Source: Macrostomum lignano (Eukaryota). Taken from it: a stretch of 64,000 bases of DNA. Below, piece by piece: positions 29,116-63,265 of the stretch; position 1 is the stretch's first letter, and each line of letters begins with the position of its first letter. A model generated the notes under the pieces. That model was not told the origin of the DNA. It saw nothing but the letters and a program-made list of their open reading frames with translations, and ran no database searches. The position numbers were made by a program, and so were the translations under genes. The DNA lies in contig NIVC01003532.1 in NCBI GenBank assembly GCA_002269645.1, forward strand, positions 1 through 64,000, in the 5' to 3' direction.

Positions 29116-30909
29116 TCAGTGTAGCGGATGCTGCACTACGGGCTCTCGCATATTGAATGACACGCTTTCAAAGAACGCCTCCGGGTCCTGCGACTGCTTG
29201 CGCATGCGGCGGCTTTCGGTGAGCATGAAGTCGAGGAACAACTCCGATGTGGCAAAGTCATCGCCTCGCTGTCTGAGATGCAGCTCTGTGAACAGTCTCA
29301 CTTGCAGAGCGGAGAATCCGAGCTGAGTGAGCAGTCTCACAACGGGCAGGTCGGCTCTCGCCTTGATGTCTCTGGCCTCGACTCTGAACTCGACTCCAGG
29401 TGTGACTGCGAGAGCCTCGTCTGCGCGACTGCTGCGGACTGCGGACCCGTCGACAGTCGCAGCACCAGCTGATGCAGTTGAGTCCGTCTGTACCAATGCA
29501 GTGTGACGCTGAGCTGAGGCGCCACAAGTCGGGTGCTGCACGGGAGGCGACAGTCGGTGCACTGTCTGTACAAAGTCGCTGCCTCGCTCCAACAACACGT
29601 GAGGACACCGAGGTGACCACCTGGCGTGCTCAACCCACACATCATCGTCGCAGCTCCACTCGCTCATGCAGAGTCCGCAGCTGAAGCAGCAGGTCGCTCT
29701 CTCGGCTTCCGAGTAGAAGAAGCCCGCCTTTGCAAGCAAGTACACTGGCTGCTGAACGAGAGCCGAGTGCAGAGACTGCGACCTCGCTTGGTAGGTCTCG
29801 AACTGTGCGCGTTTGGCAGTCACACTCGATGGATCACTCTCGAGACTGTGTTGCAGAGCTGACAGGTTCGTGAGAGCTCTCTCGGAGCACGCAGATCTCG
29901 CTACGTCGCTCGACACTGGAAGCTGAGGACGCTTCATCATGTCGAAAGCAACCAGCTTATCGTCCACATCGCGTTCTGCATTCGTTCCAAAAGTTGCGCG
30001 TGTCGCCAGCGCCCACTCGTTCAGTCCAGCGAACTCCATCGGTGGTAGCTCAGCGACCAGCTTTATGCTCCAGTCTCCGTTCACCATCACTGCTGCATCA
30101 TCTGCAGTCTGATCACTGCACTGCACTGCTTCTACCAGCTTTGCTGAACTCAAGACTCTTTCCGGCTCTCTGTGATCTCGAGGCACGTTGCCGACCTCGA
30201 CGAACAACACGAACGGACAGGTGGAGAAGTGGCGTCTGTGAGCCTCTCGGACCTGCTCGCCCGCCTCCCAGTCCTTGAGCACACCCTTGCAGAATGCACA
30301 CTTTACTCTGTCCGACTCCTGCAGGTAGAAGAATCCGTCAGCAGCCAGATCCGTCACTGACACCAGGTGAGCCGCTGTGAAGCTGGCATCTGGCAGGTGG
30401 AAAGACTGCCACCTGTTCTCCTCTCGTCTCATGTCCCACAGGTGTTGTGGAATCGAGGCCGGCATTCCACTCGTGTCCCATCGCTGATTGCGGAAGTCCA
30501 GAGTCTGCGGCACGGATGACGCTCTGCCACCAGGTGTGCTGTTGTTGTAGTACCGCAGCACCTTGCTCTTACCTGTCAGTTTTTTCTGCTGACTAATATT
30601 TTGCTCAAGATTTTGCCTAGTCGATCTTTGGATGAGTAGACGAAGTCTCGGAATTTCGACGAGGGCCACTGATATGAGACAATCCCTGAAGTCATTCGTC
30701 CAGCGAATTTCCTGAAAAATTAGTTGCAGCAGTTCCTTATGTCTCGTCTTTGAGACTATGATGAATCCAAATATTTCATTAGCGAAGTCCAATCCCTTTT
30801 GAGAGATAAGTTCTTTTGGAACTGTTTTGGATCGCAGCGATAAAATGTGTCGTTCTGTGGCTCGTATTTCAAATAGGTTGTATTTTGAACGGTTTGTTTT
30901 ACTTTCCAT
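29116..30909 (-). CDS. IAP: IAP copy 1: BIR-BIR-UBA-like, RING domain missing
   Basis: First ATG at 30909. Two C-x2-C-x16-H-x6-C BIR motifs (KCAFCKG...AHRRHFSTC; CCFSCG...EHARWSPRC). Diverges from paralogs after DPEAFF and ends VSFNMREPVVQHPLH*; AATAAA ~13 nt after the stop. Confidence 0.9.
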   Translation of the reverse strand: MESKTNRSKYNLFEIRATERHILSLRSKTVPKELISQKGLDFANEIFGFIIVSKTRHKELLQLIFQEIRWTNDFRDCLISVALVEIPRLRLLIQRSTRQNLEQNISQQKKLTGKSKVLRYYNNSTPGGRASSVPQTLDFRNQRWDTSGMPASIPQHLWDMRREENRWQSFHLPDASFTAAHLVSVTDLAADGFFYLQESDRVKCAFCKGVLKDWEAGEQVREAHRRHFSTCPFVLFVEVGNVPRDHREPERVLSSAKLVEAVQCSDQTADDAAVMVNGDWSIKLVAELPPMEFAGLNEWALATRATFGTNAERDVDDKLVAFDMMKRPQLPVSSDVARSACSERALTNLSALQHSLESDPSSVTAKRAQFETYQARSQSLHSALVQQPVYLLAKAGFFYSEAERATCCFSCGLCMSEWSCDDDVWVEHARWSPRCPHVLLERGSDFVQTVHRLSPPVQHPTCGASAQRHTALVQTDSTASAGAATVDGSAVRSSRADEALAVTPGVEFRVEARDIKARADLPVVRLLTQLGFSALQVRLFTELHLRQRGDDFATSELFLDFMLTESRRMRKQSQDPEAFFESVSFNMREPVVQHPLH

Positions 30910-32861
30910 TATTTTTTGTCGCTCGGTCAAGACAGGTGGAAGATAAAGTGTTCTCTAACTTCGAAAATTTTGGGACTATGATTGACTCACGGTTGGAAAT
31001 CTACAATGAAATGTTTTAGTGCTTTTGCAAAGGACTAAGCAATTCGAGTGGTATATAAATGATACATTTATGTATACTTAGTTATTTTGAGGTTTATTTT
31101 GCTAGATACTTTCCTGATATTTTGAACACGTTCACGACAGTATGTGTACATGCAATTTAAAATTTTGTTTTTGGCAAAAGCAAAGCACAAAAAGGTTATA
31201 GCCGCAAAAGTCAAAACGTCTCGGTTCTTACCTGTATATAGTGTGCTCAAGACAGTTCAAATTTTTAAAAAACATATTTTTTCGATGGATGAGGTGAGGT
31301 GCAGTATTAGGTTTAGTGTTATAGATAGTGTAATTTTTGTTTCCTTACTAATGAATTGTTTTGAAACTAAAAAACAGTGTTCTTAGTTCGATGCAGTTTA
31401 GAGTATTACTAGTAGATAAAATAGTTAGTTGACTTGGGGTGTGAGTGAATCTTCTTGTACAAGAACGGTTTTTATGAACAGGCTCAGTAGAGAAGCAACT
31501 ACCCCAGCCAACTACACTTTATAATCAGTGTTCACTGTTCTTAGCTCGCATTTGCGCACCAAAAGCTATATGCAAACTGTACACGCGTTGGAATGGCCGC
31601 GGTTTGTTCGTGGATTTTTCGCGGATTATTTTGGGATTTCCCAATTTTTACTTCACTGGCTGCAGTGCTAGGGCGTTAATCTCTAATCTAACCATGTGTA
31701 AAAATAATTTTCCCATTCGCCTATAAATATGTGGTGTAGCTGAAGATGGCTTCTCCATGGCATTGCCACGGTTCAACCATAGCCAGTTCGTGCTATAAAA
31801 AGGACTTCTCCGGTAAGTTCTATCTAGATTACTGCAATTATACTCTCGTTTGCGGTACTAATCTGCTTAAGGGTGCAATTCACGCTACTGAGAAATTAAG
31901 GACCTCCACACCAGTTGCTCTGAGAACACTAGCTAGCTACGTGTAGATAGGACGCATTCCCACTTGCTTGTCATGCATTAGGAAAATGATTATCTCTGAT
32001 AAAGAAGTACATAAAAAGTGTAAACTAATCTGTAATATTATTCTCATTGAGAAAAAAACTCTTATTGAAATATTGCATATATTACATTCACATTAAAACT
32101 CGAACGCTTTCTAACAATTTTGCTTTACACAACTTATATCGAGGATATATTATTGCCGTTGCTAAATTGCTCATTTGTCCATTGTTTTGATCGTCCTAAA
32201 AAGAAATTCAGAAGTCGTAATTATTATAGTTAGAGACCAGTCTCATTGCCTGCTGATTTCTAGAAGATTTCTTTGTCTTGTTTTGTTTCAGCTAGCCTAG
32301 AATTAAAGAGAAATTTCCGCGGAAATTCCACGTTATTGCCGGGAGTCGAAAATAGCACTGACGGTATTAGTCTCCAAAACAGCTGATAAAAATAGAGTAC
32401 TGGCAGCGGTGTTTTGCATGGACTAAATACGAGCTATAGACACACAAGCAAGTGTGTACACACCACTTTCGATGACGAAAAATGTGTTTGACTGGTTAAA
32501 AAAGCTGGAAAATTTATCTCATAGATTAGATTAGATTCTTTTAAGGCCACATCCTAGATGTATGATGTATAAAATTACAAAGTTATAACTGTTATATTAG
32601 AAAAATAAATGTGAAACTACATCAAACTAGGCATTAAAAAAAGAAAATACTTGCCAGACCACATCTTAGCTTTCTATGAAAAACTAAGGATCTCTCGAAA
32701 AGCTTTAACAATAGAGTATTAAGCCAAGACCCTTCTATAGGCCACTAAAATCAGTCATTCAAAAACTATACAGTACTAACAGTACCCAACCTTATTCGCA
32801 TAAAACGAACTATCATTTGCAGAAATTTAGCCTGCAGACCGAACAAAGAAGAAGCATCTAC

Positions 32862-34907
32862 ATGTCGACAGAAGTACAAAACCCAAAAAGTTCAAACTTA
32901 ATTAAAAAAGGTACGTCAAAAACAAAAGAGTGCATAAAAACGGCATGTTCAAAAATTAATAGCTATGTGGATGAAATTAGAAACGTCTTCAAACTTACCG
33001 TCCATCTTGTTAAAGAATTCGAGAGCGTTCTCAAAAAAAGAGCATATTATCTCTCAAAAAACATTTCAAATATTTTCTATGAAATTACACATTCTGCACT
33101 GAATGCCACAGATAATATGGACCATATAATAAATTGCATTGAAGAAGAACAACAGATTGCAGACGAAAAGATCCAAAGTCTTTTGTCCGTAGTTTTATCT
33201 GAAATGCAAAAACAGCGACTGCTTGTCATGAAGTCTTCAAACCAAATATCTGACCAACGAATAGTCGAGCACAAAATACAGACAGGCAAGAGCAAGGTAC
33301 TGCGGTACTACAACAACAGCACACCTGGTGGCAGAGCGTCCTCCGTGCCGCAGACTCTGGACTTCCGCAATCAGCGATGGGACACGAGTGGAATGCCGGC
33401 CTCGATTCCACAACACCTTTGGGACATGAGACGAGAGGAGAACAGGTGGCAGTCCTTTCACCTGTCAGATGCCAGCTTCACAGCGGCTCACCTGGTGTCA
33501 GTGACGGATCTGGCTGCTGACGGATTCTTCTACCTGCAGGAGTCGGACAGAGTAAAGTGTGCATTCTGCAAGGGTGTGCTCAAGGACTGGGAGGCGGGCG
33601 AGCAGGTCCGAGAGGCTCACAGACGCCACTTCTCCACCTGTCCGTTCGTTCTGTTCGTCGAGGTCGGCAACGTGCCTCGAGATCACAGAGAGCCGGAAGG
33701 AGCCTCGAGGTCTGCAAAGTTGGTAGAGGCAGTGCAGTGCAGTGATCAGACTGCAGATGATGCAGCAGTGATGGTGAACGGAGACTGGAGCATGAAGCTG
33801 GTCGCTGAGCTACCACCGATGGAGTTCGCTGGACTGAATGAGTGGGCGCTGGCGACACGCGCAACTATTGGAACGAATGCAGAACGCGGTGTGGAGGACG
33901 AGCTGGTCGCAGTCGACATGATGAAGCGTCCTCAGCTTCCAGTGTCGAGCGAAGTAGCGAGATCTGCGTGCTCCGAGAGAGCTCTCACGAACCTGTCCGC
34001 TCTGCAGCACAGTCTCGAGAGTGATCCATCGAGTGTGACTGCCAAACACACACAGTTCGAGACCTACCAAGCGAGGTCGCAGTCTCTGCACTCGGCTCTC
34101 GTTCAGCAGCCAGTGTACTTGCTTGCAAAGGCGGGCTTCTTCTACTCGGATGCCGAGAGAGCGACCTGCTGCTTCAGCTGCGGACTTTGCATGAGCGAGT
34201 GGAGCTGCGACGATGATGTGTGGGTTGAGCACGCCAGGTGGTCACCTCGGTGTCCTCACGTGTTGTTGGAGCGAGGTAGCGACTTTGTGCAGACAGTGCA
34301 CCGACTGTCGCCTCCCGTGCAGCACCCGACTTGTGGCGCCTCAGCTCAGCGTCACACTGCATTGGTACAGACGGACTCAACTGCATCAGCTGGTGCTGCG
34401 ACTGTCGACGGGTCCGCAGTCCGCAGCAGTCGCGCAGACGAGGCTCTCGCAGTCACACCTGGAGTCGAGTTCAGAGTCGAGGCCAGAGACATCAAGGCGA
34501 GAGCCGACCTGCCCGTTGTGAGACTGCTCACTCAGCTCGGATTCTCCGCTCTGCAAGTGAGACTGTTCACAGAGCTGCATCTCAGACAGCGAGGCGATGA
34601 CTTTGCCACATCGGAGTTGTTCCTCGACTTCATGCTCACCGAAAGCCGCCGCATGCGCAAGCAGTCGCAGGACCCGGAGGCGTTCTTCGAGAGCAGGATG
34701 TCTCAGATTCGGGAGTCTCTGAACCAACAGCCGAGACCCCGAGACACAACCGACTGGAAGACGTGCAAGGTGTGCATGGACAAGGAGGTGAACATCATGC
34801 TGCTGGACTGTGGTCACGTGGCCTGCTGCTCAGTGTGCGCCAAGTCGCTGAAGACGTGTCCCATCTGCAGAGCCTTCATTCGTGGGGTGGTATTTGTGCA
34901 AATGTGA
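32862..34907 (+). CDS. IAP: IAP copy 2: unique N-terminus - BIR-BIR-UBA-like-RING
   Basis: First ATG at 32862; two BIRs; C3HC4 RING CKVCMDKEVNIMLLDCGHVACCSVCAKSLKTCPICR; intronless. Confidence 0.93.
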   Translation: MSTEVQNPKSSNLIKKGTSKTKECIKTACSKINSYVDEIRNVFKLTVHLVKEFESVLKKRAYYLSKNISNIFYEITHSALNATDNMDHIINCIEEEQQIADEKIQSLLSVVLSEMQKQRLLVMKSSNQISDQRIVEHKIQTGKSKVLRYYNNSTPGGRASSVPQTLDFRNQRWDTSGMPASIPQHLWDMRREENRWQSFHLSDASFTAAHLVSVTDLAADGFFYLQESDRVKCAFCKGVLKDWEAGEQVREAHRRHFSTCPFVLFVEVGNVPRDHREPEGASRSAKLVEAVQCSDQTADDAAVMVNGDWSMKLVAELPPMEFAGLNEWALATRATIGTNAERGVEDELVAVDMMKRPQLPVSSEVARSACSERALTNLSALQHSLESDPSSVTAKHTQFETYQARSQSLHSALVQQPVYLLAKAGFFYSDAERATCCFSCGLCMSEWSCDDDVWVEHARWSPRCPHVLLERGSDFVQTVHRLSPPVQHPTCGASAQRHTALVQTDSTASAGAATVDGSAVRSSRADEALAVTPGVEFRVEARDIKARADLPVVRLLTQLGFSALQVRLFTELHLRQRGDDFATSELFLDFMLTESRRMRKQSQDPEAFFESRMSQIRESLNQQPRPRDTTDWKTCKVCMDKEVNIMLLDCGHVACCSVCAKSLKTCPICRAFIRGVVFVQM

Positions 34908-36424
34908 CTTGCAGTCGACCGATTGGATACAGGTTGATTAGCAACTTCTTCTGACTCGATATGTGATTTGTATGTCGGTGGCAAATGCACCAGAGAACTT
35001 GTAAAAAGCTGCAACGTTGCTTCAACAGAAAAAATCATTCGAAGTCGGATGAATAAATCAATATTTGGTGAAGTAGGACAAAGCTTACATGGGAATTTCA
35101 GCTATGTTGAAAGAAAGTGAGTTCTTCGTTCGGTGAATTATTCTAAGTGCAAGAGTGGCCTACGCCTGAAAAAAGCGACATAAGTTTTTATAAAAGGATT
35201 TGTTTTCGGACTTTCAATACCGGATCTCATCAATGAAACATCTGCAATGTTTTTTATATGGAATTGCGAAGCTTTGAAAGCTAAAGACTGCTGCTGAAGT
35301 ATTCGAAGCCGAGAGTTATAGTGTGCTTTCATCAGTCGTCGCAACAGTTCGCTTTTCATATCAAAAGCTTTGAACGTTGACTCCAATCAAAATGACTTAC
35401 TGTTTCTGAAAAAGTTCACAGATTTCGGCATGGGACTCAAGCCAGAACGGAAGTCGGTGACGTCATGAATTGCAAAAATCTGTATAGCTTTTGCATAGAT
35501 TTTGCGATGAGACGCCTTTTTGAGAACTTGGACATCTGATCTTTGATTTTCAATCCATTTAAAGTAACAAATATTTTATACTAACCAAGTTATCGTAGAA
35601 GTAGCTTATCGCAGTAGGAATATTTGCAAATTTTAATAGAAGTAAATATTGTTTTCTTATATTATAATTTTAATTATATTATACGCTCCTATTATTCACT
35701 GAATGGCTTGTCGGTACAATGTCATTGTAGTTTTCTTCATCTGATAATTATATTGTGCATATGTAATGGAAGTACTTCGTGTAAGGCTTTCGATAGATTT
35801 AAAACATCTGAACGCATTTGTCCGTGAACGGAAAGAATCCACTGTACGGTACATCGAATCGCTTTACATGACACATCATCGCCAATTTGAATAGTTTTGA
35901 TTCTTGCAAAAGAAAAGGCATGATAGTATGAAAGAAATGTTAACGAAGTTTAGTGGCTATGTTTGTAAATTGAATTGGAATGGAACTTTTATTAAGGTAT
36001 TTTTTAACTGTTCCAGCAGGCTCCTACCTAGTTATCCTTATCCTTCACACTCCAATCTCTTTCTTTCTTTTTTCATCAGATCCTCTTTGATCCTAGTCTG
36101 CTTTCACCCTACTCTCCACCGTAATCTGCATCCTCTACCTCTCGCACTACCGTTATGATGTTCTATCTCATTTGCCTACATTTTCACACTAAAAAACGTA
36201 GGCAAACAGTTAAAAAAAGTCTCGTAAAGTCAAGAAGCCAGATCGGGCAACTTCAGATGGTGCTGCGGTGCCAGTGAGCCGACATAGTCCGGCCGTTCCA
36301 TTGAAGCCATCAGAGGCCATCACTTAGACGATGCAGATGACTTCAGGCTTGGTCCCGCCCGAATTGAAGTCCTAAAGGTGCTGGGCGAAATAACCGTTAG
36401 CCCCCGCACCCTTGAATCGCGGCA

Positions 36425-37355
36425 TCATGCAGAATCGTTGCTGCCGCCAGTCTGACCGAAGATGCTCGATACAGAGCGAACCAGTTGGCTCAGGATGTCA
36501 CCTGCGCCGCAAAATGACATCTGCATCGCTGACGAGCTCCCGTTGGTGGCGGCTGCAGTTACCGACTGGCCGTTGATGTCGGTGACGCCTCCGCCTGCAA
36601 ACTGATGAGCCACGTCAGCGGCATTCGCCGTCGAGTAGCACCGTCGGTGGCTTCGGCCGTTGCCAGCTGCAGACGACATCGCAGAGTCGCTGGCGAAGTC
36701 TTCCAGCCGCTCCCGGTTGGTGTTGCGAACATCGTCACCGATGGCTGCTTGGATGCCGCCGCTGTCGCTGACATTGCTCTGACTGGCTGCAACCGGTGAC
36801 ATCGCTGGAGAACAGGGAAGGGTTGAGCTGATGCTGGAGGCACCAATTTAAAAAGTGTAATGTTCAAGTGTTTCCAGTTTCATCAACTCATTTCACATGT
36901 TCATCGATCGATCATGTTAGATCGTTTAGCTCCTAACTTTCTAGCTACATGTATACTATGTAATGCTTTTTTAGGCCTTCATCTTTTACTCAAAACGGGA
37001 TGATTCAGTGTCTTGAAATCATAGCGTGATTTTTTTCTGGAGTAGAACTGATTGATGGATGTTATTTTAGACTTGACGGGGGGTCATTTTGAAGTTGATT
37101 AGTGACATTTTGGAGCTCTCTACCTTCCGACTGTCCATAGCGCCCGCCTCTGTCAGGTGAAGCTGATCCGGTTTCGAAGCTGACTGCCATGGATGACGCG
37201 GATCCTGCAGTCGATTGTTGATGCAGCGACATAGCAGCCCGACTCAGACTTTGGAGTCCATGAGCATCTGCATCTGTAGGAAGCGACAGGTCGTCTTCTG
37301 CTGACAGTCCGCTGAATTCCGAGGCCAGGTCCGGCTCGCTCGTTGTGTTTGGCAT
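36425..37355 (-). CDS. Two-exon orphan gene, Ser/Ala/Gly-rich low-complexity protein, 203 aa (exons 37355-37124 and 36804-36425)
   Basis: GC-rich coding-like exons; donor gaag|gtagag and acceptor cccttccctgttctccag join in phase 1; TATAAATA ~40 bp upstream of ATG. No recognisable domain. Confidence 0.55.
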
Positions 37356-37392
37356 TTCCGCAGGACAGAAGAGGGAGAGGCTGGCACAATAC

Positions 37393-37400
37393 TATTTATA
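37393..37400 (-). promoter_or_regulatory. TATA box of the orphan gene
   Basis: tatttata on + = TATAAATA on -, 38 bp upstream of ATG 37355. Confidence 0.45.
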
Positions 37401-41065: not shown

Positions 41066-41520
41066 AACAATAAACTACAACCCCTATAAGCTTTAGAGCT
41101 TTTAGTTTTTGACAGTTGTTCCTAATAACATTTCATTATTTAAAGATCAAATTAAAACTGTTTTAGAGAGAAACGACTTTCAACAAGAGGCTACTGAAGC
41201 ATCGAGATAACAAAATAATAAATTGATAAAAACAACTGCTACACGACTTTTTTCTCCGAGGATTGGTTTGAATCATGAATCATCTCAACTTTCGAAGCGT
41301 GCTTCAGTGGCAATTGGACTCATCTTATTCAACTCAAACGGTCCAAATTCAAAATCAATCCCAGCGACAAGCCGTAGACATCAGCGATGTTGAGCTCACT
41401 AGCAATGCGGTCATGGAAACAGCAGATTTTAATAGAGCTCAATAAACAGACAATACAATATCAAACCCAAGTGTTAAAAATTCATTAGCTGTTGCACTAA
41501 AAGCCATAGCTGACACAGAA

Positions 41521-43233
41521 ATGGCCAAGCAGCGAATGCTCATAGCAGCTCAGCATCGAGTTTCAACATACTTTGGTACACCTGACACGCGACAATTGGT
41601 ACAAACAGGTAAGAGCAAGGTGCTGCGGTACTACAAAAACAGCACACCTGGTGGAAGAGCGTCCTCCGTGCCGCAGACTCTGGACTTCCGCAATCAGCGA
41701 TGGGACACGAGTGGAATGCCCGCCTCGATTCCACAACACCTGTGGGACATGAGACGAGAGGAGAACAGGTGGCAGTCCTTCCACCTGCCAGATGCCAGCT
41801 TCACAGCGGCTCACCTGGTGTCCGTGACGGATCTGGCTGCTGACGGATTCTTCTACCTGCAGGAGTCGGACAGAGTAAAGTGTGCATTCTGCAAGGGTGT
41901 GCTCAAGGACTGGGAGGCGGGCGAGCAGGTCCGAGAGGCTCACAGACGCCACTTCTCCACCTGTCCGTTCGTGCTGTTCGTCGAGGTCGGCAACGTGCCT
42001 CGAGACCACAGAGAGCCGGAAGGAGTCTCGAGGTCAGCAAAGCTGGTAGAGGCAGTGCAATGCTGTGATCAGACTGCAGATGATGATGCAGCAGTGATGG
42101 TGAACGGAGACTGGAGCATGAATCTGGTCGCTGAGCTACCACCGATGGAGTTCGCTGGACTGAACGAGTGGGCGCTGGCGACACGCGCAACTATTGGAAC
42201 GAATGCAGAACGCGTTGTGGACGATAAGCTGGTTGCTTTCGACATGATGAAGGGTCCTCAGCTTCCAGTGTCGAGTGAGGTAGCGAGATCTGCGTGCTCC
42301 GAGAGAGCTCTCACGAACCTGTCCGCTCTGCAGCACAGTGTCGAGAGTGATCCATCGAGTGTGACTGCCAAACACGCACAGTTCGAGACCTACCAAGCGA
42401 GGTCGCAGTCTCTGCACTCGGCTCTCGTTCAGCAGCCAGTGTACTTGCTTGCAAAGGCGGGCTTCTTCTACTCGGAAGCCGAGAGAGCGACCTGCTGCTT
42501 CAGCTGCGGACTCTGCATGAGCGAGTGGAGCTGCGACGATGATGTGTGGGTTGAGCACGCCAGGTGGTCACCTCGGTGTCCTCACGTGTTGTTGGAGCGA
42601 GGTAGCGACTTTGTACAGGCGGTGCATCGACTGTCGCCTCCCGTGCAGCACCCGACTTGTGGCGCCTCTGCTCAGCGTCACACTGCATTGGTACAGACGG
42701 ACTCAACTGCATCAGCAGGTGCTGCGACTGTCGACGGGTCCGCAGTCCGCAGCAGTCGCGCAGACGAGGCTCTCGCAGTCACTCCTGGAGTCGAGTTTAG
42801 AGTCGAGGCCAGAGACATCAAGGCGAGAGCCGACCTGCCCGTTGTGAGACTGCTCACTCAACTCGGATTCTCCGCCCTGCAAGTGAGACTGTTCACAGAG
42901 CTGCATCTCAGACAGCGAGGCGATGACTTTGCCACATCGGAGCTGTTCCTCGACTTCATGCTCACCGAGAGCCGCCGCATGCGCAAGCAGTCGCAGGACC
43001 CGGAGGCGTTCTTCGAGAGCAGGATGTCTCAGATTCGGGAGTCTCTGAACCAACAGCCGAGACACCGAGACACAACCGACTGGAAGACGTGCAAGGTGTG
43101 CATGGACAAGGAGGTGAACATCATGCTGCTGGACTGTGGTCACGTGGCCTGCTGCTCAGTGTGCGCCAAGTCGCTGAAGACCTGCCCCATCTGCAGGGCC
43201 TTCATCCGTGGCTCAGTGTTTATTAAGATGTAA
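41521..43233 (+). CDS. IAP: IAP copy 3: BIR-BIR-UBA-like-RING; upstream in-frame extension from ATG 41275 is broken by TAA at 41443
   Basis: 570-aa ORF with two BIRs and a C3HC4 RING; upstream frame homologous to the copy 4 N-terminus. Confidence 0.9.
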   Translation: MAKQRMLIAAQHRVSTYFGTPDTRQLVQTGKSKVLRYYKNSTPGGRASSVPQTLDFRNQRWDTSGMPASIPQHLWDMRREENRWQSFHLPDASFTAAHLVSVTDLAADGFFYLQESDRVKCAFCKGVLKDWEAGEQVREAHRRHFSTCPFVLFVEVGNVPRDHREPEGVSRSAKLVEAVQCCDQTADDDAAVMVNGDWSMNLVAELPPMEFAGLNEWALATRATIGTNAERVVDDKLVAFDMMKGPQLPVSSEVARSACSERALTNLSALQHSVESDPSSVTAKHAQFETYQARSQSLHSALVQQPVYLLAKAGFFYSEAERATCCFSCGLCMSEWSCDDDVWVEHARWSPRCPHVLLERGSDFVQAVHRLSPPVQHPTCGASAQRHTALVQTDSTASAGAATVDGSAVRSSRADEALAVTPGVEFRVEARDIKARADLPVVRLLTQLGFSALQVRLFTELHLRQRGDDFATSELFLDFMLTESRRMRKQSQDPEAFFESRMSQIRESLNQQPRHRDTTDWKTCKVCMDKEVNIMLLDCGHVACCSVCAKSLKTCPICRAFIRGSVFIKM

Positions 43234-45649: not shown

Positions 45650-47045
45650 TCTGCAGAATATAGCTCGTACCGTATATTCTGTGGCTAAGCTCTGCAGAAT
45701 ATACTGTATATTCTGTGGCTAGGCTCTGCAGAATATACTGTATATTCTGTGGCTAGGCTCTGCAGAATATACTGTATATTCTGTGGCTAAGCTCTGCAGA
45801 ATATACTGTATATTCTGTGGCTAGGCTCTGCAGAATATACTGTATATTCTGTGGCTAAGCTCTGCAGAATATACTGTATATTCTGTGGCTAAGCTCTGCA
45901 GAATATACTGTATATTCTGTGGCTAGGCTCTGCAGAATATACTGTATATTCTGTGGCTAAGCTCTGCAGAATATACTGTATATTCTGTGGCTAAGCTCTG
46001 CAGAATATACTGTATATTCTGTGGCTAGGCTCTGCAGAATATACTGTATATTCTGTGGCTAAGCTCTGCAGAATATACTGTATATTCTGTGGCTAGGCTC
46101 TGCAGAATATACTGTATATTCTGTGGCTAAGCTCTGCAGAATATACTGTACATTCTGTGGCTAAGCTCTGCAGAATATACTGTATATTCTGTGGTTAAGC
46201 TCTGCAGAATATACTGTATATTCTGTGGCTAAGCTCTGCAGAATATACTGTATATTCTGTGGCTAGGCTCTGCAGAATATACTGTATATTCTGTGGCTAA
46301 GCTCTGCAGAATATACTGTATATTCTGTGGCTAAGCTCTGCAGAATATACTGTATATTCTGTGGCTAAGCTCTGCAGAATATACTGTATATTCTGTGGCT
46401 AAGCTCTGCAGAATATACTGTATATTCTGTGGCTAAGCTCTGCAGAATATACTGTATATTCTGTGGCTAGGCTCTGCAGAATATACTGTATATTCTGTGG
46501 CTAGGCTCTGCAGAATATACTGTATATTCTGTGGCTAAGCTCTGCAGAATATACTGTATATTCTGTGGCTAAGCTCTGCAGAATATACTGTATATTCTGT
46601 GGCTAGGCTCTGCAGAATATACTGTATATTCTGTGGCTAAGCTCTGCAGAATATACTGTATATTCTGTGGCTAGGCTCTGCAGAATATACTGTATATTCT
46701 GTGGCTAGGCTCTGCAGAATATACTGTATATTCTGTGGCTAAGCTCTGCAGAATATACTGTATATTCTGTGGCTAAGCTCTGCAGAATATACTGTATATT
46801 CTGTGGCTAAGCTCTGCAGAATATACTGTATATTCTGTGGCTAAGCTCTGCAGAATATACTGTATATTCTGTGGCTAAGCTCTGCAGAATATACTGTATA
46901 TTCTGTGGCTAAGCTCTGCAGAATATAGCTCGTACCGTATATTCTGTGGCTAAGCTCTGCAGAATATAGCTCGTACCGTATATTCTGTGGCTAAGCTCTG
47001 CAGAATATAGCTCGTACCGTATATTCTGTGGCTAAGCTCTGCTAA
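45650..47045. repeat. 34-bp tandem array, each unit containing a 21-bp palindrome (cagaatatac-t-gtatattctg), ~40 copies
   Basis: Unit gctctgcagaatatactgtatattctgtggcta(a/g); no unique spacers, so not CRISPR. Confidence 0.95.
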
Positions 47046-54577: not shown

Positions 54578-55186
54578 CACTCAGCAACAGTCAAAACCGC
54601 CACCCTACCGAGAGAGGCAACTTCTCTCTCACCTCAACTGCAAGTGACGTAACTTGCGCCACGGCGTGGCTAAAGCTGGGTGAGAGTGAATTCCAGGGTG
54701 AGAGTAAAAAAGGGACTGGGGTTGGGGTTGGGGGTGCAACAGTACACGTGACAATGGTCAGGCATATGACAGACGCTGAACGATGGCGCGCTGTTGGCAT
54801 GCTAGAAGCTGGTGCATCCATCAGCGCAGTTCGACAATTCAACGTTCAACAATTCGAGCGCTATTAACGAAGTCCCAAGATACTGGTAGTGTTCAACACG
54901 CAGCCATAGGCAGCCAGCGCCATGATCTCCGCGGCTCAACAGCCAGGGAAAATCGACGTCTGCTGCGGATTGTCAGGCGAACTCCGACCGCGCCAGCCAC
55001 CCTGCTCCGTCTAATGTGGGGTGAAAGAAGCAGATGGGGCATCCCATGTATCCCCTGATTGCCCTCTCCTGCATTCACTCTCACCCAGCTTTAGCCACGC
55101 CGTGGCACAAGTTACGTCACTTGCAGTTGAGGTGAAAGAGAAGTTGCCTCTCTCGATAGGGTGGCGGTTTTGACTGTTGTTGAGTG
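54578..55186 (+). mobile_element. Internally deleted Tc1 element with ~130-bp TIRs and TA target duplication
   Basis: TA|cactcagcaacagtcaaaaccgcc...ggcggttttgactgttgttgagtg|TA; internal remnant MVRHMTDAERWRAVGMLEAGAS and TGSV...ARENRRLLRIVRRTP (Tc1 HTH region). Confidence 0.85.
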
Positions 55187-56469
55187 TATTTTTACTAATT
55201 AGCAATTAATTATTTTTGCTACTCGGCACAAGCCAGTAAGCAAATTTGATTTCTAAAAACTGCTTCGAGTATTACTGATCCCATCAATGGGTATTGCCTA
55301 GCTCAATGGAAGTATGAAATTGCTAAACTGCAGACGATGATAAGAGACTGCTGAAGGTATTGCTAAATGCTGAGTTGTGCAAAAGACTGCCGATATGCAT
55401 CGAAAATGGATAAGTGAGCCACACAATGCTGGGCAAATTTCTAGATTGTTAAAAGGATCATTCATGCAGACCTTCCAGACTTATGAGTGTATAGCTGCAA
55501 ACTGCTGAGGGGATAACTATCTACAGAGTTTTGAGTGGATTAAGTGCAACTTTGCTGAGGGGACAGTTCTAGGCCGCTAAGGGTAAAGTGTTAAATGTTC
55601 ATGAAAGTTTTAGACTGCAAAGTGGATAAATGCAGACTGCTAAGAGATGACTGCAGTCTGTTTTGCGGCATAAGATGAAGGGATAATTTCAGGTTGTTCT
55701 GGGGATAACTGCCGATTTCTGGGGGGTTAACTTCAAACTGCTGAAGTTACTAAACTTCTTGAATAGTAGAAGGTTTATTTCGACCATCTGTCAATAGGCG
55801 TAATAGCCGCAGTAGGCAGGCAGTAACAGGCATAGACTGAAGGTCGGCAGTTCGAGCCTGAATTGAAGTAGCGAATTTATTTCTGACCTGTGACAATATT
55901 TACTGTCTACTATACAGATTCCTGCAGATTTTTAACATTTAATATTAAATGTACTTTTGCTGGATCTGCGTTAATCTTCTAGAACAGTGCTACTCTGATG
56001 TAAATGCTAATTTACAGGAGGTATTACTAATCTGGGTGAGCAGCGCTAATCGGGGAGAGCAGTGCTAATCTGATGTACTGATGTGTTCCTTATTACCAGT
56101 CCTCAACTGTAATCAAGGAACACTCACTTCTAGCTCGGTAGCTAGGCAACCCAGTAAGTCAACAGAAGGTATTTAATTACCTTGAATCCTTATGAGATAT
56201 CTCTTCAATGTGGATCTCGTGTAGATCTCGTCTGTAGTTGTGTGAATCTCAGTTGATCTGATAGATCAGGCGCCTTGGTTCTTCAGTTGCTCTGGTCCTG
56301 GTTCCTCTTGTACTTCCGATGAAGTTGTTCCGGCCGGTATCTGTCGTTCGGACCAATAGGAAGCTTCCAAATTAACAATGGGTACCCTGCGCCAAACTGC
56401 GGTATCGTCTAAGCCTTCTCTTTCTAGCAGTGGCTCTATGCACTCTAGGAATAGCTCCGGAAAGCTGCT

Positions 56470-57340
56470 GTCAAAGCTCATGGGGATAATTACTGGAATG
56501 CTGTGGCTGTTGGGGGAATTGCCGAGATTGTTAAAGTAAGGTAAGGGTTAAACCATAAATGAATTGGCCTGTCAAACAGAAAATACTCATTGGGGAATGT
56601 CAAGGCTCATGGGGGTATCTGAAATATACTGTGGCTCAAGGCTCAGGAGGAATTGCTGTGATTGCAAAACATGGGGATATTGCCGAAATTCTGTGCCTCA
56701 AATAGGAGTTGCTGAGATATCAAGACTCATTGGGGAATTGCTGTGCTGTCAAAGCTCATGGGGTATCCGTGTAATGCTGTACGCTGTGGCTCTTGGGGTA
56801 TTGCTGAGATGCTAGGGTTCACATGGGAACGGCTAGGATGTCAAAGGCTCATATGGGAATTAATAAAATTCACGAAATGTCAAGGTTCATTGGGAAATTA
56901 TTGAAATGCAGTGACTCGACAGGGTTAGGGTTAGGGTCAGTTTTGATTCAAACATAGAATAACCGCTCTGTCAACCATAAAAGACTTGCTAAGATAGAAT
57001 TGCTAAGATATCAAGGCTCATGGGGGGAATCGCTGAGTTACCAAGGCTCATGAAGAAATTGCAGAGATATCAAGGCTCATAAGGGGATTGCTGAATTGTA
57101 GGGGAGAGGTGAGTTGGGTTGCTGGGATGTCAAGGCTTACTGGGCTGGGAGAATTGCGTAGATGTCAAGGCTCAAGTATAATTGCTGCGATGTCGAGGCT
57201 TACTGAGGAAATTTCTGAGATGTCAAGGCTTACTGGGGATTCGGGGAAATTGCTGAGATGTCAAGGCTTACTGGGGGAATAGCTGAGATGTCAAGGCTTA
57301 CTGGGGGAATTACTGAGATGTCAAGGCTCATGGGGGGTGG
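56470..57340. repeat. Degenerate ~30-bp repeat (tgctgagatgtcaaggctcatgggggaat)
   Basis: Recurrent tgtcaaggct(c/t)a core with variable spacing. Confidence 0.7.
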
Positions 57341-58367
57341 CTGAATTGTTGGGGGGAGGGAGTAGGTTTCTGGGCGATTGTCAGATAGTCAAGTAGTACG
57401 GCTCAAGTAGCTCATTTAGTTCAGATAATGAAAATGTACACGTAAGTGATCCTAATTTCTGCTAATAGGAAATACCAGCGTATTTATTAAAGGTTTGATT
57501 CTCTGAGTTAGGCTAATAAAGAGGGGTCTAAGGCCGTCAGGGATTGGCATATTAAGCTTCTGCAGACCATAATATAACTAGGCCAATAACGATACGCACT
57601 AAGAGTTTTGCTTGAAAGGATAAGCACTATTTGCTAATTTAAAAAGGGAAAGACAAGCGCTAAACTGATAAAAAGCCACCCGGAGGGGGCTAAATGGCTA
57701 GTCCATCCATTAAACTAAATTCCATTAAACTAAAAATGGTCTGTCGGTAGGTATGTGTAATCGATTCTAGAAAAAATGGCTCATCTTTTTCGAACTTGCA
57801 CTGTTCGATCAGAAATTTTTCCGTGACGGTACAAGTGTCTTGGCTAAGAAATTGCTCAATGCTAAAGGGATTAAATATTCAAAAAACATGCTTTTTTGCA
57901 AAGGTCAAGCAGCTCTTTCGACTTGAAATGCATTGTAAGAATGCTAGAGAAAAAACTGACTGGTTGAATTCTGATTCTGAAATAGATTGCATCACAATAG
58001 GCTTTTTATTTATTCAGTCTGTGTACTGGCTGAATTTTGACACTCAATTGAATTGCGTCACAGCGTGGAAGCATAGCACAATACTTGATTTATATTGCGT
58101 AACCATATTGGTAACTTTATTAGAGACTGACTTGCCTAAGAAATTGATTGTCATAACTGCTTCGTGTGACTTTTACTCTAGCTGACTTGGTGTGAGTGTT
58201 GAATTATAAGTGCTACAAATTCACTTATAAATTCGATGAGAGCTAGCCTAGAGGTGAACAGACTGGACTGCTAATGCAGCGACCTGGGATCGAATCTTAG
58301 TACTGTAAAAAAAAGTAATGTAATTTTTTTATTGAAAGCTTTTATTAAAATATTAATTAAAAGGTCC

Positions 58368-60175
58368 TGGATTACTGCACTTGATAAACCAAGGACTACT
58401 GCACTTGATAAACCAAGGACTACTGCACTTGATAAACCAAGGACTACTGCACTTGATAAACCAAGGATTACTGCACTTGATAAACCAAGGACTACTGCAC
58501 TTGATAAACCAAGGACTACTGCACTTGATAAACCAAGGATTACTGCACTTGATAGGCTAAGGATTACTGCGCTTGATAAACCAAGGACTACTGCACTTGA
58601 TAAACCAAGGACTACTGCACTTGATAAACCAAGGACTACTGCACTTGATAAACCAAGGATTACTGCACTTGATAGGCTAAGGATTAATGCACTTTATAAA
58701 CCAAGGACTACTGCACTTGATAAACCAAGGACTACTGCACTTGATAAATCAAGGACTACTGCACTTGATAAACCAAGGATTACTGCACTTGATAAACCAA
58801 GGATTACTGCACTTGATAAACCAAGGACTACTGCACTTGATAAACCAAGGACTACTGCACTTGATAAACCAAGGATTACTGCACTTGATAGGCTAAGGAT
58901 TACTGCGCTTGATAAACCAAGGACTACTGCACTTGATAAACCAAGGATTACTGCACTTGATAGGCTAAGGATTACTGCGCTTGATAAACCAAGGACTACT
59001 GCACTTGATAAACCAAGGATTACTGCACTTGATAAGCTAAGGATTACTGCACTTGATAAACCAAGGACTACTGCACTTGATAAACCAAGGACTACTGCAC
59101 TTGATAAACCAAGGACTACTGCACTTGATAAACCAAGGATTACTGCACTTGATAAACCAAGGACTACTGCACTTGATAAACCAAGGACTACTGCACTTGA
59201 TAAACCAAGGATTACTGCACTTGATAGGCTAAGGATTACTGCGCTTGATAAACCAAGGACTACTGCACTTGATAAACCAAGGACTACTGCACTTGATAAA
59301 CCAAGGACTACTGCACTTGATAAACCAAGGATTACTGCACTTGATAGGCTAAGGATTAATGCACTTTATAAACCAAGGACTACTGCACTTGATAAACCAA
59401 GGACTACTGCACTTGATAAATCAAGGACTACTGCACTTGATAAACCAAGGATTACTGCACTTGATAAACCAAGGATTACTGCACTTGATAAACCAAGGAC
59501 TACTGCACTTGATAAACCAAGGACTACTGCACTTGATAAACCAAGGATTACTGCACTTGATAGGCTAAGGATTACTGCGCTTGATAAACCAAGGACTACT
59601 GCACTTGATAAACCAAGGATTACTGCACTTGATAGGCTAAGGATTACTGCGCTTGATAAACCAAGGACTACTGCACTTGATAAACCAAGGATTACTGCAC
59701 TTGATAAGCTAAGGATTACTGCACTTGATAAACCAAGGACTACTGCACTTGATAAACCAAGGACTACTGCACTTGATAAACCAAGGACTACTGCACTTGA
59801 TAAACCAAGGATTACTGCACTTGATAGGCTAAGGATTAATGCACTTGATAAACCAAGGATTACTGCACTTGATAAACCAAGGACTACTGCACTTGATAAA
59901 CCAAGGACTACTGCACTTGATAAATCAAGGACTACTGCACTTGATAAACCAAGGATTACTGCACTTGATAAACCAAGGATTACTGCACTTGATAAACCAA
60001 GGACTACTGCACTTGATAAACCAAGGACTACTGCACTTGATAAACCAAGGATTACTGCACTTGATAGGCTAAGGATTACTGCGCTTGATAAACCAAGGAC
60101 TACTGCACTTGATAAACCAAGGATTACTGCACTTGATAAGCTAAGGATTACTGCACTTGATAGAGCAAGGATCAT
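58368..60175. repeat. 24-bp minisatellite (ccaaggactactgcacttgataaa), ~75 copies, with a 672-bp higher-order period
   Basis: Rare variant ggattaatgcactttata recurs at ~58681 and ~59353. Confidence 0.95.
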
Positions 60176-60324
60176 TGCACTAGATAATAAAATGATTCTT
60201 GCACTATCTTAGAAGCGGATAATTGCGCTGAAAAAAAAGAGATTATTGCGCTAGCTGAGACATGGATTATTGCACAACCTGAGAAAGCGATTATTTCATT
60301 AGCGGAGGAAATATTTGCACTAGC

Positions 60325-60640
60325 TACTTGCTGTCTAATGGATGCTTGCTATCTGCAGGATGCTTGCTATCTGCAGGATGCTTGCTATCTTCAGGATGCT
60401 TGCTATCTGCAGTATGCTTGCTATCTGCAGGATGCTTGCTATCTGCAGGATGCTTGCTATTTGGGGGGATGCTTACTATTTTGGAGGATGCTTGCTATCT
60501 GGGTGGAGGCTTGCTATCTGCAGGATGCTTGCTATCTGCAGGATGCTTGCTATTTGGAGGGATGCTTACTATTTTGGAGGATGCTTGCTATCTGGGTGGA
60601 GGCTTGCTATCTGGGGAATGCTTGCTGTCTTGGGGATGTT
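60325..60640. repeat. 18-bp tandem repeat (atgcttgctatctgcagg)
   Basis: Directly visible, with a duplicated internal variant block. Confidence 0.85.
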
Positions 60641-60861
60641 TTCTATTTAGGGGGAATGTCTGTGTCTTTGTAAAATTCAGGTGGAATTTAGGGGGAATCT
60701 TTGTGAAAACTATATTTTGTCTTTCTGTTAATTTAAAAAAAGTAAGAGATTCATAGCAAACATCTTTGTTCATGACAATTTTACTCGAATAAGGTGATTT
60801 ATAAAACTTAAGAAGGAATTGGTTCTTAAGAAAATGTGCTTTTTTAATTGTTTTATATAAA

Positions 60862-60915
60862 TATTTTTGCTCCTTGCTTATTGCGCGCCCCGAAGGGGGG
60901 CACTAGATTGCTAGT
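60862..60915 (+). mobile_element. Helitron-like 3' terminus (GC hairpin + CTAG|T), copy B
   Basis: ctccttgcttattgcgcgccccgaaggggggcactagattgctagt; hairpin gccccgaagggg followed by ctag. Confidence 0.55.
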
Positions 60916-61279
60916 AGCAATAGCTAAATTTAGATAGTTACAAGTGTAGACAATGATACAATCAAGTGTAGCCTAAATAAATAAACTTTAACATTGATAA
61001 TAGCTTAGAAAAAGAGCTAATTGTCTTTAATTCTTTAGTATAGCATATTGGTGAATATCTAGATATCTAGATATATCATACTTGTTTCATGTCCATGTTG
61101 CGCTCCTATTGGCTGAAAGGCTTATCTGTTTGATAGTTCTGAATTAATGTACTGACCCATTTCAGTGTAAACTTGCTAACCAAGTAAATATAAAAAAAAA
61201 TTCAGACACCTGCAGCCACAAACTACGCTGTCAAATCATTTTGCTGCATACCGCTTTGTAGCAGTTCAATTTGTGAAAA

Positions 61280-63265
61280 ATGACGAACTTAATGTCAGTT
61301 AGTAATTGGCTAACAGACTCCGCCGTCAATCAACCGCAAAATGTAGTACTAAATAACACATTCGCCACATCAGAGAGGGATTCCGATATATTAGACTATG
61401 AGATTACGAGCAATGCTGTCATACCAACTGAGGCATTGATACCAATATTACCTACTCCATGCAACTTAGCAAACAATAGTACGAAAGACTCCTTAGCTGT
61501 TGCACTGAAAGCCATAGCTGACACTGAAATGACTAAGCAGCGAATGCTCATAGCAGCTCAGCTTCGAGATTCAACGCAAATTCAACTTCAGTACTTCAGT
61601 ACACCTGACACGCGACAATTGGTACAAACAGGTAAGAGCAAGGTGCTGCGGTACTACAACAACAGCACACCTGGTGGCAGAGCGTCCTCCGTGCCGCAGA
61701 CTCTAGACTTCCGCAATCAGCGATGGGACACGAGTGGAATGCCGGCCTCGATTCCACAACACCTGTGGGACATGAGACGAGAGGAGAACAGGTGGCAGTC
61801 CTTCCACCTGCCGGATGCCAGCTTCACAGCGGCTCACCTGGTGTCAGTGACGGATCTGGCTGCTGACGGATTCTTCTACCTGCAGGAGTCGGACAGAGTA
61901 AAGTGTGCATTCTGCAAGGGTGTGCTCAAGGACTGGGAGGCGGGCGAGCAGGTCCGAGAGGCTCACAGACGCCACTTCTCCACCTGTCCGTTCGTGCTGT
62001 TCGTCGAAGTCGGCAACGTGCCTCGAGATCACAGAGAGCCAGAAAGAGTCTTGAGTTCAGCAAAAATAGTAGAGGCAGTGCAATGCAGTGATCAGACTGC
62101 AGATGATGCAGCAGTGATGGTGAACAGAGACTGGAGCATGAATCTGGTCGCTGAGCTACCACCGATGGAGTTCGCTGGACTGAACGAGTGGGCGCTGGCG
62201 ACACGCGCAACTATTGGAACGAATGCAGAACGCGTAGTGGACGACGAGCTGGTCGCTTTCAACATGATGAAGCGTCCTCAGCTTCCAGTGTCGAGCGAAG
62301 TAGCGAGATCTGCGTGCTCCGAGAGAGCGCTCACGAACCTGTCCGCTCTGCAGCACAGTCTCGAGAGTGAGCCATCGAGTGTGACTGCCAAACACGCACA
62401 GTTCGAGACCTACCAAGCGAGGTCGCAGTCTCTGCACTCGGCTCTCGTTCAGCAGCCAGTGTACTTGCTTGCAAAGGCGGGCTTCTTCTACTCGGAAGCC
62501 GAGAGAGCGACCTGCTGCTTCAGCTGCGGACTCTGCATGAGCGAGTGGAGCTGCGACGATGATGTGTGGGTTGAGCACGCCAGGTGGTCACCTCGATGTC
62601 CTCACGTGTTGTTGGAGCGAGGCAGCGACTTTGTACAGGCGGTGCATCGACTGTCGCCTCCCGTGCAGCACCCGACTTGTGGTGCTTCTGCTCAGCGTCA
62701 CACTGCATTGGTACAGACGGAATCAACTGCATCAGCTGGTGCTGCGACTGTCGACGGGTCCGCCGCCACTACTGCAGTCCGCAGCAGTCGCGCAGACGAG
62801 GCTCTCGCAGTCACTCCTGGAGTCGAGTTCAGAGTCGAGGCCAGAGACATCAAGGCGAGAGCCGACCTGCCCGTTGTGAGACTGCTCACTCAGCTCGGAT
62901 TCTCCGCTCTGCAAGTGAGACTGTTCACAGAGCTGCATCTCAGACAGCGAGGCGATGACTTTGCCACATCGGAGCTGTTCCTCGACTTCATGCTCACCGA
63001 GAGCCGCCGCATGCGCAAGCAGTCGCAGGATCCGGAGGCGTTCTTCGAGAGCAGGATGTCTCAGATTCGAGACTCTCTAAACCAACAGCCTAGACGCCGA
63101 GACACAACCGACTGGAAGACGTGCAAGGTGTGCATGGACAAGGAGGTGAACATCATGCTGCTGGACTGTGGTCACGTGGCCTGCTGCTCAGTGTGCGCCA
63201 AGTCGCTGAAGACGTGCCCCATCTGCAGGGCCTTTATTCGCGGCTCCCTATTTTTTCGTGAGTGA
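61280..63265 (+). CDS. IAP: IAP copy 4: N-terminal extension - BIR-BIR-UBA-like-RING
   Basis: 661-aa intronless ORF; two BIRs; C3HC4 RING; 4-aa insertion (ATTA) relative to the other copies. Confidence 0.93.
   Translation: MTNLMSVSNWLTDSAVNQPQNVVLNNTFATSERDSDILDYEITSNAVIPTEALIPILPTPCNLANNSTKDSLAVALKAIADTEMTKQRMLIAAQLRDSTQIQLQYFSTPDTRQLVQTGKSKVLRYYNNSTPGGRASSVPQTLDFRNQRWDTSGMPASIPQHLWDMRREENRWQSFHLPDASFTAAHLVSVTDLAADGFFYLQESDRVKCAFCKGVLKDWEAGEQVREAHRRHFSTCPFVLFVEVGNVPRDHREPERVLSSAKIVEAVQCSDQTADDAAVMVNRDWSMNLVAELPPMEFAGLNEWALATRATIGTNAERVVDDELVAFNMMKRPQLPVSSEVARSACSERALTNLSALQHSLESEPSSVTAKHAQFETYQARSQSLHSALVQQPVYLLAKAGFFYSEAERATCCFSCGLCMSEWSCDDDVWVEHARWSPRCPHVLLERGSDFVQAVHRLSPPVQHPTCGASAQRHTALVQTESTASAGAATVDGSAATTAVRSSRADEALAVTPGVEFRVEARDIKARADLPVVRLLTQLGFSALQVRLFTELHLRQRGDDFATSELFLDFMLTESRRMRKQSQDPEAFFESRMSQIRDSLNQQPRRRDTTDWKTCKVCMDKEVNIMLLDCGHVACCSVCAKSLKTCPICRAFIRGSLFFRE

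Follow-up and report, generated by a model that had tools for sequence, protein, structure and literature searches.

A lineage-specific, intronless IAP subfamily of Macrostomum lignano with a sharply bounded core that is probably homogenised by gene conversion

We analysed a 64,000-nucleotide (nt) stretch of the genome of the flatworm Macrostomum lignano (contig NIVC01003532.1 of assembly GCA_002269645.1, positions 1–64,000; hereafter the window), which carries four copies, c1 to c4, of an inhibitor of apoptosis (IAP) gene. With a probability of roughly 0.68, and reasoning from sequence, we interpret them as members of a lineage-specific intronless IAP subfamily: old paralogs whose core would be homogenised by recurrent ectopic gene conversion while the N-terminus, the C-terminal tail and the flanks drift. 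Each gene would comprise an orphan N-terminal extension of about 100–140 amino acids (aa) that is predicted to be helical, a core with BIR1, BIR2, a helical (UBA-like) domain and a RING, and a private six-codon tail with its 3' untranslated region (3'UTR). All comparisons are based on assembled sequence and predicted proteins. Further copies are labelled C and D (same contig) and A, B and E (other contigs); the suffix h marks a homeolog.

The core is about 1.6 kb long and shows pairwise DNA identities of 95.0–97.1% among c1–c4 over 1416–1766 nt. Nothing but the core aligns, as the flanks of the four cores gave no BLAST match between copies. It starts at ACA GGT AAG (T-G-K) and ends after ...CGT GG (F-I-R-G), six codons before the stop. 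A preliminary description of this DNA had placed the T-G-K-S-K-V starts at 30576 (minus strand), 33282, 41605 and 61628, and all these coordinates hold; the core alignment also contains the 1-aa indel (in c3) and the 4-aa indel (in c4) that it mentioned. The same description reported an abrupt drop of identity at both core edges. Sliding 30-nt bins over eight paralogs (c1–c4, A, B, C and D) bear this out, with a fall to the random level within one bin. At the 5' edge the mean pairwise identity steps from 0.60 to 0.97 within one bin, and at the 3' edge it passes from 0.90–1.00 through 0.62 to 0.55 in successive bins; unrelated 30-mers score 0.54, which we took as the random baseline. Homology starts and ends at the same two positions in every copy of the family. 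The core itself has a dS (synonymous substitutions per synonymous site) of 0.05–0.12 and a ratio of non-synonymous to synonymous rates (dN/dS) of 0.14–0.37 among the main-group copies. From this dS, neutral flanks should be about 90% identical, yet they are at the random level.

The site patterns within the core are mosaic. The seven main-group copies give 561 pairs of informative sites, of which 316 (56%) fail the four-gamete test, and adjacent informative sites carry an identical pattern seven times, against 0.93 expected (p < 0.0002). Among c1–c4 all three 2+2 bipartitions occur and are clustered: c1 and c4 against c2 and c3 at core nt 420–431, c1 and c3 against c2 and c4 at 635–644, and c1 and c2 against c3 and c4 at 458–521 and 1029–1391. 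A neighbour test similar to the pairwise homoplasy index was significant for adjacent sites only (w = 1, p = 0.027). It was not significant in wider windows (w = 2–5, p = 0.10–0.13; w = 10, p = 0.67), which we attribute to the tracts being very short.

The most telling result for exchange between the cores is the comparison of homeologs. M. lignano is a hidden polyploid with a recent whole-genome duplication (PMC10468722). The copies c2h, c3h, Ah and Eh match their partners colinearly, flanks included, at about 97% identity, and are thus homeologs or haplotigs. The N-termini and cores diverge by 0.75% and 2.42%, respectively, in c2/c2h, by 1.25% and 2.36% in c3/c3h, by 0.50% and 2.92% in A/Ah, and by 1.25% and 2.80% in E/Eh. 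Pooled over the pairs, this amounts to 15 differences in 1600 N-terminal positions versus 169 in 6437 core positions (Fisher p = 1.4e-5). Homeologous cores are therefore 2–5 times more diverged than their own N-termini, and the downstream flanks differ by 0.5–2.1%. Between homeologs, it is the selectively constrained part that has diverged most, which is the reverse of the comparison between paralogs. In the three main-group pairs, 46–67% of the core differences have both states represented in other paralogs, in clusters of 40–100 nt, and the private core differences (0.8–1.4%) equal the flank rate. N-termini pair strictly by locus, whereas in the core a copy's nearest neighbour is not its homeolog: c2 differs least from D (2.4%) and c3h (2.5%) and more from c2h (2.7%), and the copies nearest to c3 and A are D (1.7%) and c4, respectively. 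The preliminary description had offered, as one of two options, a homogenisation by gene conversion that is confined to the core, with the N-terminus left to diverge. The mosaic site patterns and the homeolog comparison support this option, and on such sequence evidence ectopic conversion of the core is well supported.

In the mechanism that we infer, the paralogs would be old, the synonymous sites of their N-termini being saturated. Recurrent, short-tract and homology-limited ectopic conversion would hold the 1.6-kb core at 95–98% identity, both within the array and between contigs. As heteroduplex needs homology, conversion would end at the first non-homologous base, so that the knife-edge boundaries would be maintained; once the N-terminus and the tail had diverged, the step in identity would maintain itself. 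The N-terminus, tail and flanks would escape conversion and could drift in a near-neutral manner towards an AT-rich composition like that of intergenic DNA, the need for an open frame being their main constraint.

Several observations weigh against conversion as the whole explanation. The origin of the exact edge positions, common to all paralogs including the 88%-identical E, is not explained. The excess core divergence of E/Eh is barely shared with the sampled paralogs (4 of 48 sites). The core has a GC content of 0.58–0.59 and a GC content at third codon positions (GC3) of 0.65–0.68, equal to that of local single-copy genes, so that there is no sign of GC-biased conversion and the AT-rich N-terminus is the odd part of the open reading frame (ORF). 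The local coding baseline was provided by the ORFs at 1440–2705 and 7168–8427, two unrelated neighbouring single-copy genes with GC3 values of 0.68–0.75; with GC3 there the same or higher, we rejected the idea that GC-biased gene conversion made the core GC-rich. Finally, the assembly was polished with short reads by Pilon, and cross-mapping among near-identical cores could have created some of the 40–100-nt mosaic patches (PMC5730564).

Extended to its limit, this last point would make the entire pattern an artefact of assembling or polishing a genome that is rich in repeats and of hidden polyploidy (PMC10468722), which we regard as very improbable. Mlig_3_7 is a Canu assembly of PacBio reads that was subsequently polished by Pilon with Illumina and RNA-seq reads (PMC5730564), and the gene model P0073 joins the N-terminus of c2 to the core of c4 across 28 kb, so cross-mapping between copies does happen. 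However, polishing fixes single bases and small indels and cannot make 1.6 kb 96–98% identical between otherwise unalignable loci. The same architecture is found on seven contigs of the assembly and in proteins from the independent ML2 assembly (P0001, P0003), and PacBio reads with anchors in the unique flanks easily bridge a repeat of 1.6 kb. The risk of artefact is confined to the fine mosaic.

The N-termini are coding. The frame of the core remains open for 54–190 codons upstream in nine of nine paralogs (at least 118 codons in eight of them), whereas the other two frames close after 1–26 codons. Indels between related N-termini are multiples of three, which keeps the frame. With divergence saturated and lengths differing, only selection against stops and frameshifts explains such an open upstream frame. 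The transcript-derived GenBank coding sequences (CDSs) P0002, P0077 and P0080 run as a single exon from the N-terminal ATG through the core, and the fusion of N-terminus and core in mRNA is thus indirectly supported. For c2, AlphaFold2 predicts two long N-terminal helices (residues 19–78 and 85–136; predicted local distance difference test, pLDDT, 55–75) and a disordered linker over the junction with the core (residues 135–171). Two copies are without a normal N-terminus, namely c3, which has a nonsense codon, and C, whose frame is open and has no ATG.

The preliminary description had also noted a faint motif shared between the N-termini, which proved to be real. Smith-Waterman scores against shuffled sequences give z = 6.1 for c1–c2, z = 8.2 for c2–c4 and z = 3.1–3.5 for comparisons with copy D, and the motifs ..EIT[SH].. 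and L..A...[KR]QR[LM]L recur. As the N-termini are homologous between copies, the loci descend as paralogs from a single ancestral gene in which the extension was already present. In the distal N-termini the proportion of synonymous differences (pS) is 0.6–1.0, meaning that synonymous sites are saturated. In the neighbour pairs c3/c4 and A/B, the tract of high identity reaches about 140 nt into the N-terminus (91–93%, pS 0.14–0.18) before pS abruptly becomes 0.6–1.0, which looks like an occasional conversion event past the usual boundary. The N-termini are AT-rich, as had been described, with a GC content of 0.33–0.42 versus the 0.58–0.59 of the core, and their GC3 of 0.28–0.44 resembles the surrounding intergenic DNA (GC 0.31–0.51).

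Between homeologs, the N-termini differ by 3 synonymous and 10 non-synonymous changes, giving a ratio of non-synonymous to synonymous proportions (pN/pS) of 0.92 from 13 changes only, as older comparisons are saturated. The simplest reading is a weakly constrained extension that needs an open frame, and thus relaxed constraint rather than directed diversification, although 13 changes leave room for positive selection. The idea of a diversifying regulator with constant and variable regions, put forward in the preliminary description, so far lacks support, given this pN/pS, the intergenic level of N-terminal GC3, one nonsense copy and one copy without ATG. Searching the N-termini against Pfam yielded no family and only sub-threshold noise, such as 18 bits for GMP_PDE_delta, where the cutoff is 25. 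A nine-sequence N-terminal profile found nothing at E ≤ 0.01 among 5.8 billion proteins, but this profile is too weak for a database of that size and the result is uninformative. An exhaustive HMMER search of 1.84 billion representatives with a three-sequence profile, of limited sensitivity, returned one match, P0082. We rejected P0082 as a homolog, as its sequence is that of a translated tandem repeat in which the same short motif is matched five times.

A more far-reaching and doubtful hypothesis is that the helical N-terminus serves as a recognition or regulation module whose diversity is useful. Each paralog would then aim the same BIR-RING ubiquitin-ligase core, protected by conversion, at a different partner or pathogen factor, and the 5' boundary would be kept by selection or by RNA- or cDNA-templated conversion from the end of a processed mRNA. 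If true, this would amount to a constant-effector, variable-adaptor repertoire in a regenerating flatworm.

The strongest rival to translation through the junction would regard the N-termini as outron or leader. mRNAs would be trans-spliced to a spliced leader (SL) at the ACAG/G core edge, or start there, and translation would begin at a methionine inside the core. We consider this unlikely, while both isoforms may exist. In eight of nine paralogs the boundary reads ...ACAG followed directly by GTAAGAGC, and SL trans-splicing, at 30% of M. lignano genes in a deduplicated estimate (PMC8629364), counts in its favour. The required methionine is available, since an in-frame ATG (MPASIP) lies 36 codons into the core. 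The canonical M. lignano IAP, P0009, begins at the corresponding position in the alignment, and P0004 and P0079 are annotated as starting there; the earlier statement that the core has no start codon of its own was therefore inexact. The ML2 models P0001, P0003 and P0005 start at KSKV. The intergenic-like GC3 and the pN/pS of the N-termini, the nonsense codon of c3 and the missing ATG of copy C also fit an untranslated leader. However, the sequence at the edge is AAACAG, AGACAG or TGACAG, with ACTG and no AG in copy E, and does not match the published acceptor [TC]TNCAG (PMC8629364). For the gene models of Mlig_3_7, TransDecoder predicted ORFs in assembled transcripts that had been split at their trans-splice and poly(A) sites (PMC5730564), yet the CDSs of P0002, P0077 and P0080 include the N-terminus. 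The two long helices predicted for the N-terminus likewise argue against an outron, and the frame kept open upstream in every paralog, despite saturation and changes in length, speaks for translation through the junction.

A search with the c2 protein places the subfamily in a wider context. Its closest relatives are all from M. lignano and are 79–96% identical over the core. The next best is the canonical P0009 (37%), followed by IAPs of arthropods, annelids, brachiopods and molluscs at less than 30%. The subfamily comprises at least eight paralogous loci plus homeologs, and six of the paralogs (c1–c4, C and D) lie on this contig, with C (minus strand) and D (plus strand) 10–20 kb past the end of the window. 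A and B are tandem neighbours, 8 kb apart on another contig, and E is more diverged at 88% identity. All family CDSs are single exons. P0009 (483 aa; L008 5001–7292, contig NIVC01000140.1) has no N-terminal extension and contains one intron of about 830 nt inside BIR1; it is likely the parental type of the intronless family. Bivalve IAPs likewise divide BIR domains over two exons (PMC7831173). Copy B (L001 18271–19829, contig NIVC01000199.1) has an intact ORF with islands of random-level identity at core nt ~1080–1200 and ~1400–1500. These islands fall in predicted disordered linkers, inside sequence that is 98–100% identical to the family consensus, and are either unconverted ancient islands or local replacements. 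In the ML2 assembly, the UniProt models P0005, P0007 and P0078 contain an IAP core that is cut at ...CPICRAF(IR) and fused to downstream reverse-transcriptase or repeat sequence, probably by annotation read-through into neighbouring transposable elements.

The second option of the preliminary description was a mobile IAP cassette. Here the core would be a discrete unit, copied into older loci in one or a few bursts by a mobile element or from a processed-IAP cDNA donor, with no continuous conversion. We find this improbable. It would account for identical knife-edge boundaries in at least eight paralogs, including the diverged E, for the compositional break exactly at the core edge, and for an intronless family beside an intron-bearing canonical paralog. 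The core also begins 108 nt before the ancestral start codon, as an mRNA would with its 5'UTR, and some ML2 models fuse it to reverse-transcriptase sequence (P0005). However, the core edges in the window show no target-site duplication, terminal repeat, poly(A) tract or SL remnant, and no ORF of at least 150 aa between the copies in the window resembles a transposable-element gene. At its 3' edge the core ends within the sequence that codes for the RING, with six codons left before the stop. Homology between loci also extends to the N-termini and tails, which makes the loci paralogs of one gene and not unrelated hosts, and no core-less protein resembling the N-terminus was found among the 1.84 billion representatives, in a search of limited sensitivity. 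After a burst the cores should be related as in a tree, but 56% of the pairs of informative sites are incompatible, and exchange of the core went on after the genome duplication. The mobile cassette is thus left unsupported.

Under recurrent conversion among old paralogs, the position of the edges could go back to the origin of the subfamily. Its ancestor was probably a retrocopy of the canonical IAP, whose 5' end would be the present boundary, and AT-rich DNA upstream would have been recruited as a new N-terminus. The start of the core 36 codons before the ancestral start codon and the absence of the BIR1 intron from the family suggest such a retrocopy. The missing poly(A) tract, target-site duplication and SL remnant at the core edges could have been erased if the origin is old.

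On the protein level, the preliminary description had proposed a BIR-BIR-UBA-RING architecture. Pfam finds BIR twice in each of c1–c4 (E 1e-26 to 1e-29) and a zf-C3HC4_3 RING in c2, c3 and c4 (E ~4e-13) but none in c1. The zinc ligands C437, C440, H457 and C464 are invariant in an alignment of 55 sequences. AlphaFold2 models the BIR domains with pLDDT > 90, and Foldseek gives TM-scores of 0.8–0.9 to BIR3 of XIAP and cIAP1. Sequence matches in the PDB are cIAP1, XIAP, DIAP1, ML-IAP and NAIP, and the best structural match of the whole c2 model is BIR3-UBA-CARD-RING of cIAP1 (PDB 3t6p, Foldseek). The UBA is not confirmed by sequence, as the linker between BIR2 and RING matches no Pfam family even at E ≤ 10; in the place claimed for it, residues 541–601 of c2 form a confidently predicted helical domain.

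The coordinates of the four copies in the window are listed in Table 1.

Table 1. The four IAP copies in the window and their parts
Feature	Position in the window	Strand	Basis or remark
c1, RING-less IAP gene	29116–30909	-	ORF; two Pfam BIR, no RING
c1, N-terminus	30577–30909	-	
c1, putatively converted core	29164–30576	-	
c1, private tail	29116–29163	-	15 codons and stop
c2, full IAP gene	32862–34907	+	ORF, Pfam, alignment, AlphaFold2
c2, N-terminus	32862–33281	+	140 aa
c2, core	33282–34885	+	
c2, private tail	34886–34907	+	VVFVQM and stop
c3, IAP gene with broken N-terminus	41275–43233	+	ORF, alignment
c3, N-terminal ORF	41275–41604	+	
c3, proximal N-terminal segment	41476–41604	+	81–92% identical to c4 61484–61627
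c3, core	41605–43211	+	
c3, tail	to 43233	+	SVFIKM and stop
c4, full IAP gene	61280–63265	+	ORF, Pfam, alignment
c4, N-terminus	61280–61627	+	
c4, core	61628–63243	+	4-aa insertion AATT
c4, tail	to 63265	+	SLFFRE and stop

Of the four IAP genes claimed initially, c2, c3 and c4 have the full core. c1 is truncated and lacks the RING: it departs from the other copies after EAFFES at 29164, reaches a stop 15 codons on, and has an AATAAA 12 nt past the stop. A tRNA-derived short interspersed element was considered as the cause of this truncation and rejected; ARAGORN found no tRNA-like gene, and the sequence 3' of c1 is not a repeat of other loci, short pieces apart. The N-terminal ORF of c3, which begins at the ATG at 41275, is interrupted by an in-frame TAA at 41443–41445, and the next ATG lies at 41521. 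Its homeolog, P0080, is intact and has a serine codon where c3 has the nonsense codon. The GenBank model Mlig029966g1 (P0073, 685 aa; window 32862–63265, L004 10001–40404) combines the N-terminus of c2 with the core and tail of c4 over a 28-kb "intron" that skips c3. This join is almost certainly an artefact of cross-mapping or of chimeric transcripts of the near-identical cores. The record that holds this model agrees with the window at every base of their overlap (22862–64000). In it, c1 and c3 as well as the true c2 and c4 have no gene models of their own.

When comparing the M. lignano genes with those of bivalves, there are clear parallels. Hard clam and oysters have lineage-specific IAP expansions that arose by tandem duplication and retroposition (PMC7831173, PMC8917759). 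Both are large lineage-specific lophotrochozoan IAP families with tandem arrays and dispersed copies, and both include intronless members beside a parental-type gene with an intron-split BIR, as well as variants that lost the RING (here c1). Whereas PMC7831173 never mentions gene conversion, the M. lignano copies appear to be under concerted evolution of a defined 1.6-kb tract. They also differ from bivalve IAPs in their orphan helical N-terminal extension without a Pfam match, and in their host, a flatworm, for which we found no IAP study.

Conversion limited to the conserved part of a tandem multigene family is known from hsp70 genes, globin genes and the mouse Naip/Birc1 array. The M. lignano family resembles these in that one tract is far more alike than its flanks, variants are shared in a mosaic manner and duplicated loci differ more inside the tract. 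Here, however, the edges are unusually sharp, with a one-bin step from the random level to 97%, and both lie inside a single ORF; one exon joins homogenised and saturated parts of very different GC3. With DIAP2, cIAP1/2 and XIAP the proteins share two BIR domains with zinc ligands, a C-terminal C3HC4 RING and a hydrophobic tail after the RING. Unlike these, they have an extra N-terminus of 100–140 aa without a known homolog and a UBA that is not detectable by sequence.

Lineage-specific IAP expansion is thus already known from bivalves, and that part of a gene can evolve in concert is textbook knowledge. A literature search for M. lignano IAPs or their gene identifiers found nothing. What is new is the organism, the orphan N-terminal extension and the exceptionally sharp boundary within one exon.

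The surroundings of the four copies contain further single-exon ORFs and several tandem arrays. An ORF on the minus strand (1440–2705, GC3 0.75) encodes an alpha/beta-hydrolase (Pfam Abhydrolase_1, E = 1.5e-10) whose C-terminus has a polyglutamine run. On the plus strand, a 419-aa ORF (7168–8427, GC3 0.68) that looks rich in hydrophobic stretches and has a poly-Gly/Ser insert has no Pfam match and, judged from its sequence, is possibly a multi-pass membrane protein. A minisatellite with the 24-nt unit TGTGTGGTGTCTGTCCAATGTCTG spans 18257–25072; its 285 copies show 95% matches, and the array has strong GC and AT skew. An annotated AMOP-domain gene (752-aa product, record positions 22862–26877) contains or adjoins it, and the AMOP match lies at 16267–16887 on the plus strand. 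Two further arrays occupy 45668–47042 (34-nt unit, 40 copies), between c3 and c4, and 58369–60187 (24-nt unit, 76 copies), about 1.1 kb upstream of the ATG of c4. Copy A, too, is flanked by arrays of this kind in L001 and L005, and minisatellites seem to occur regularly in the spacers of these IAP clusters.

If our interpretation is correct, the subfamily would be an unusually clean natural case of homology-limited conversion within a single exon, in which the core evolves as one population over at least eight loci. It could be useful for measuring the lengths and boundaries of conversion tracts in a hidden polyploid, where the recent whole-genome duplication provides an internal clock. For work on the animal, the near-identity of the cores has practical consequences. 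RNA interference, in situ probes, RNA-seq quantification and gene models will cross-react in the core, and Mlig029966g1 is already a c2/c4 chimera; copy-specific reagents must target the N-terminus or the 3'UTR. M. lignano serves as a model for regeneration and stem cells, and here it proves to have an expanded IAP subfamily that is undescribed and carries an orphan N-terminal domain.

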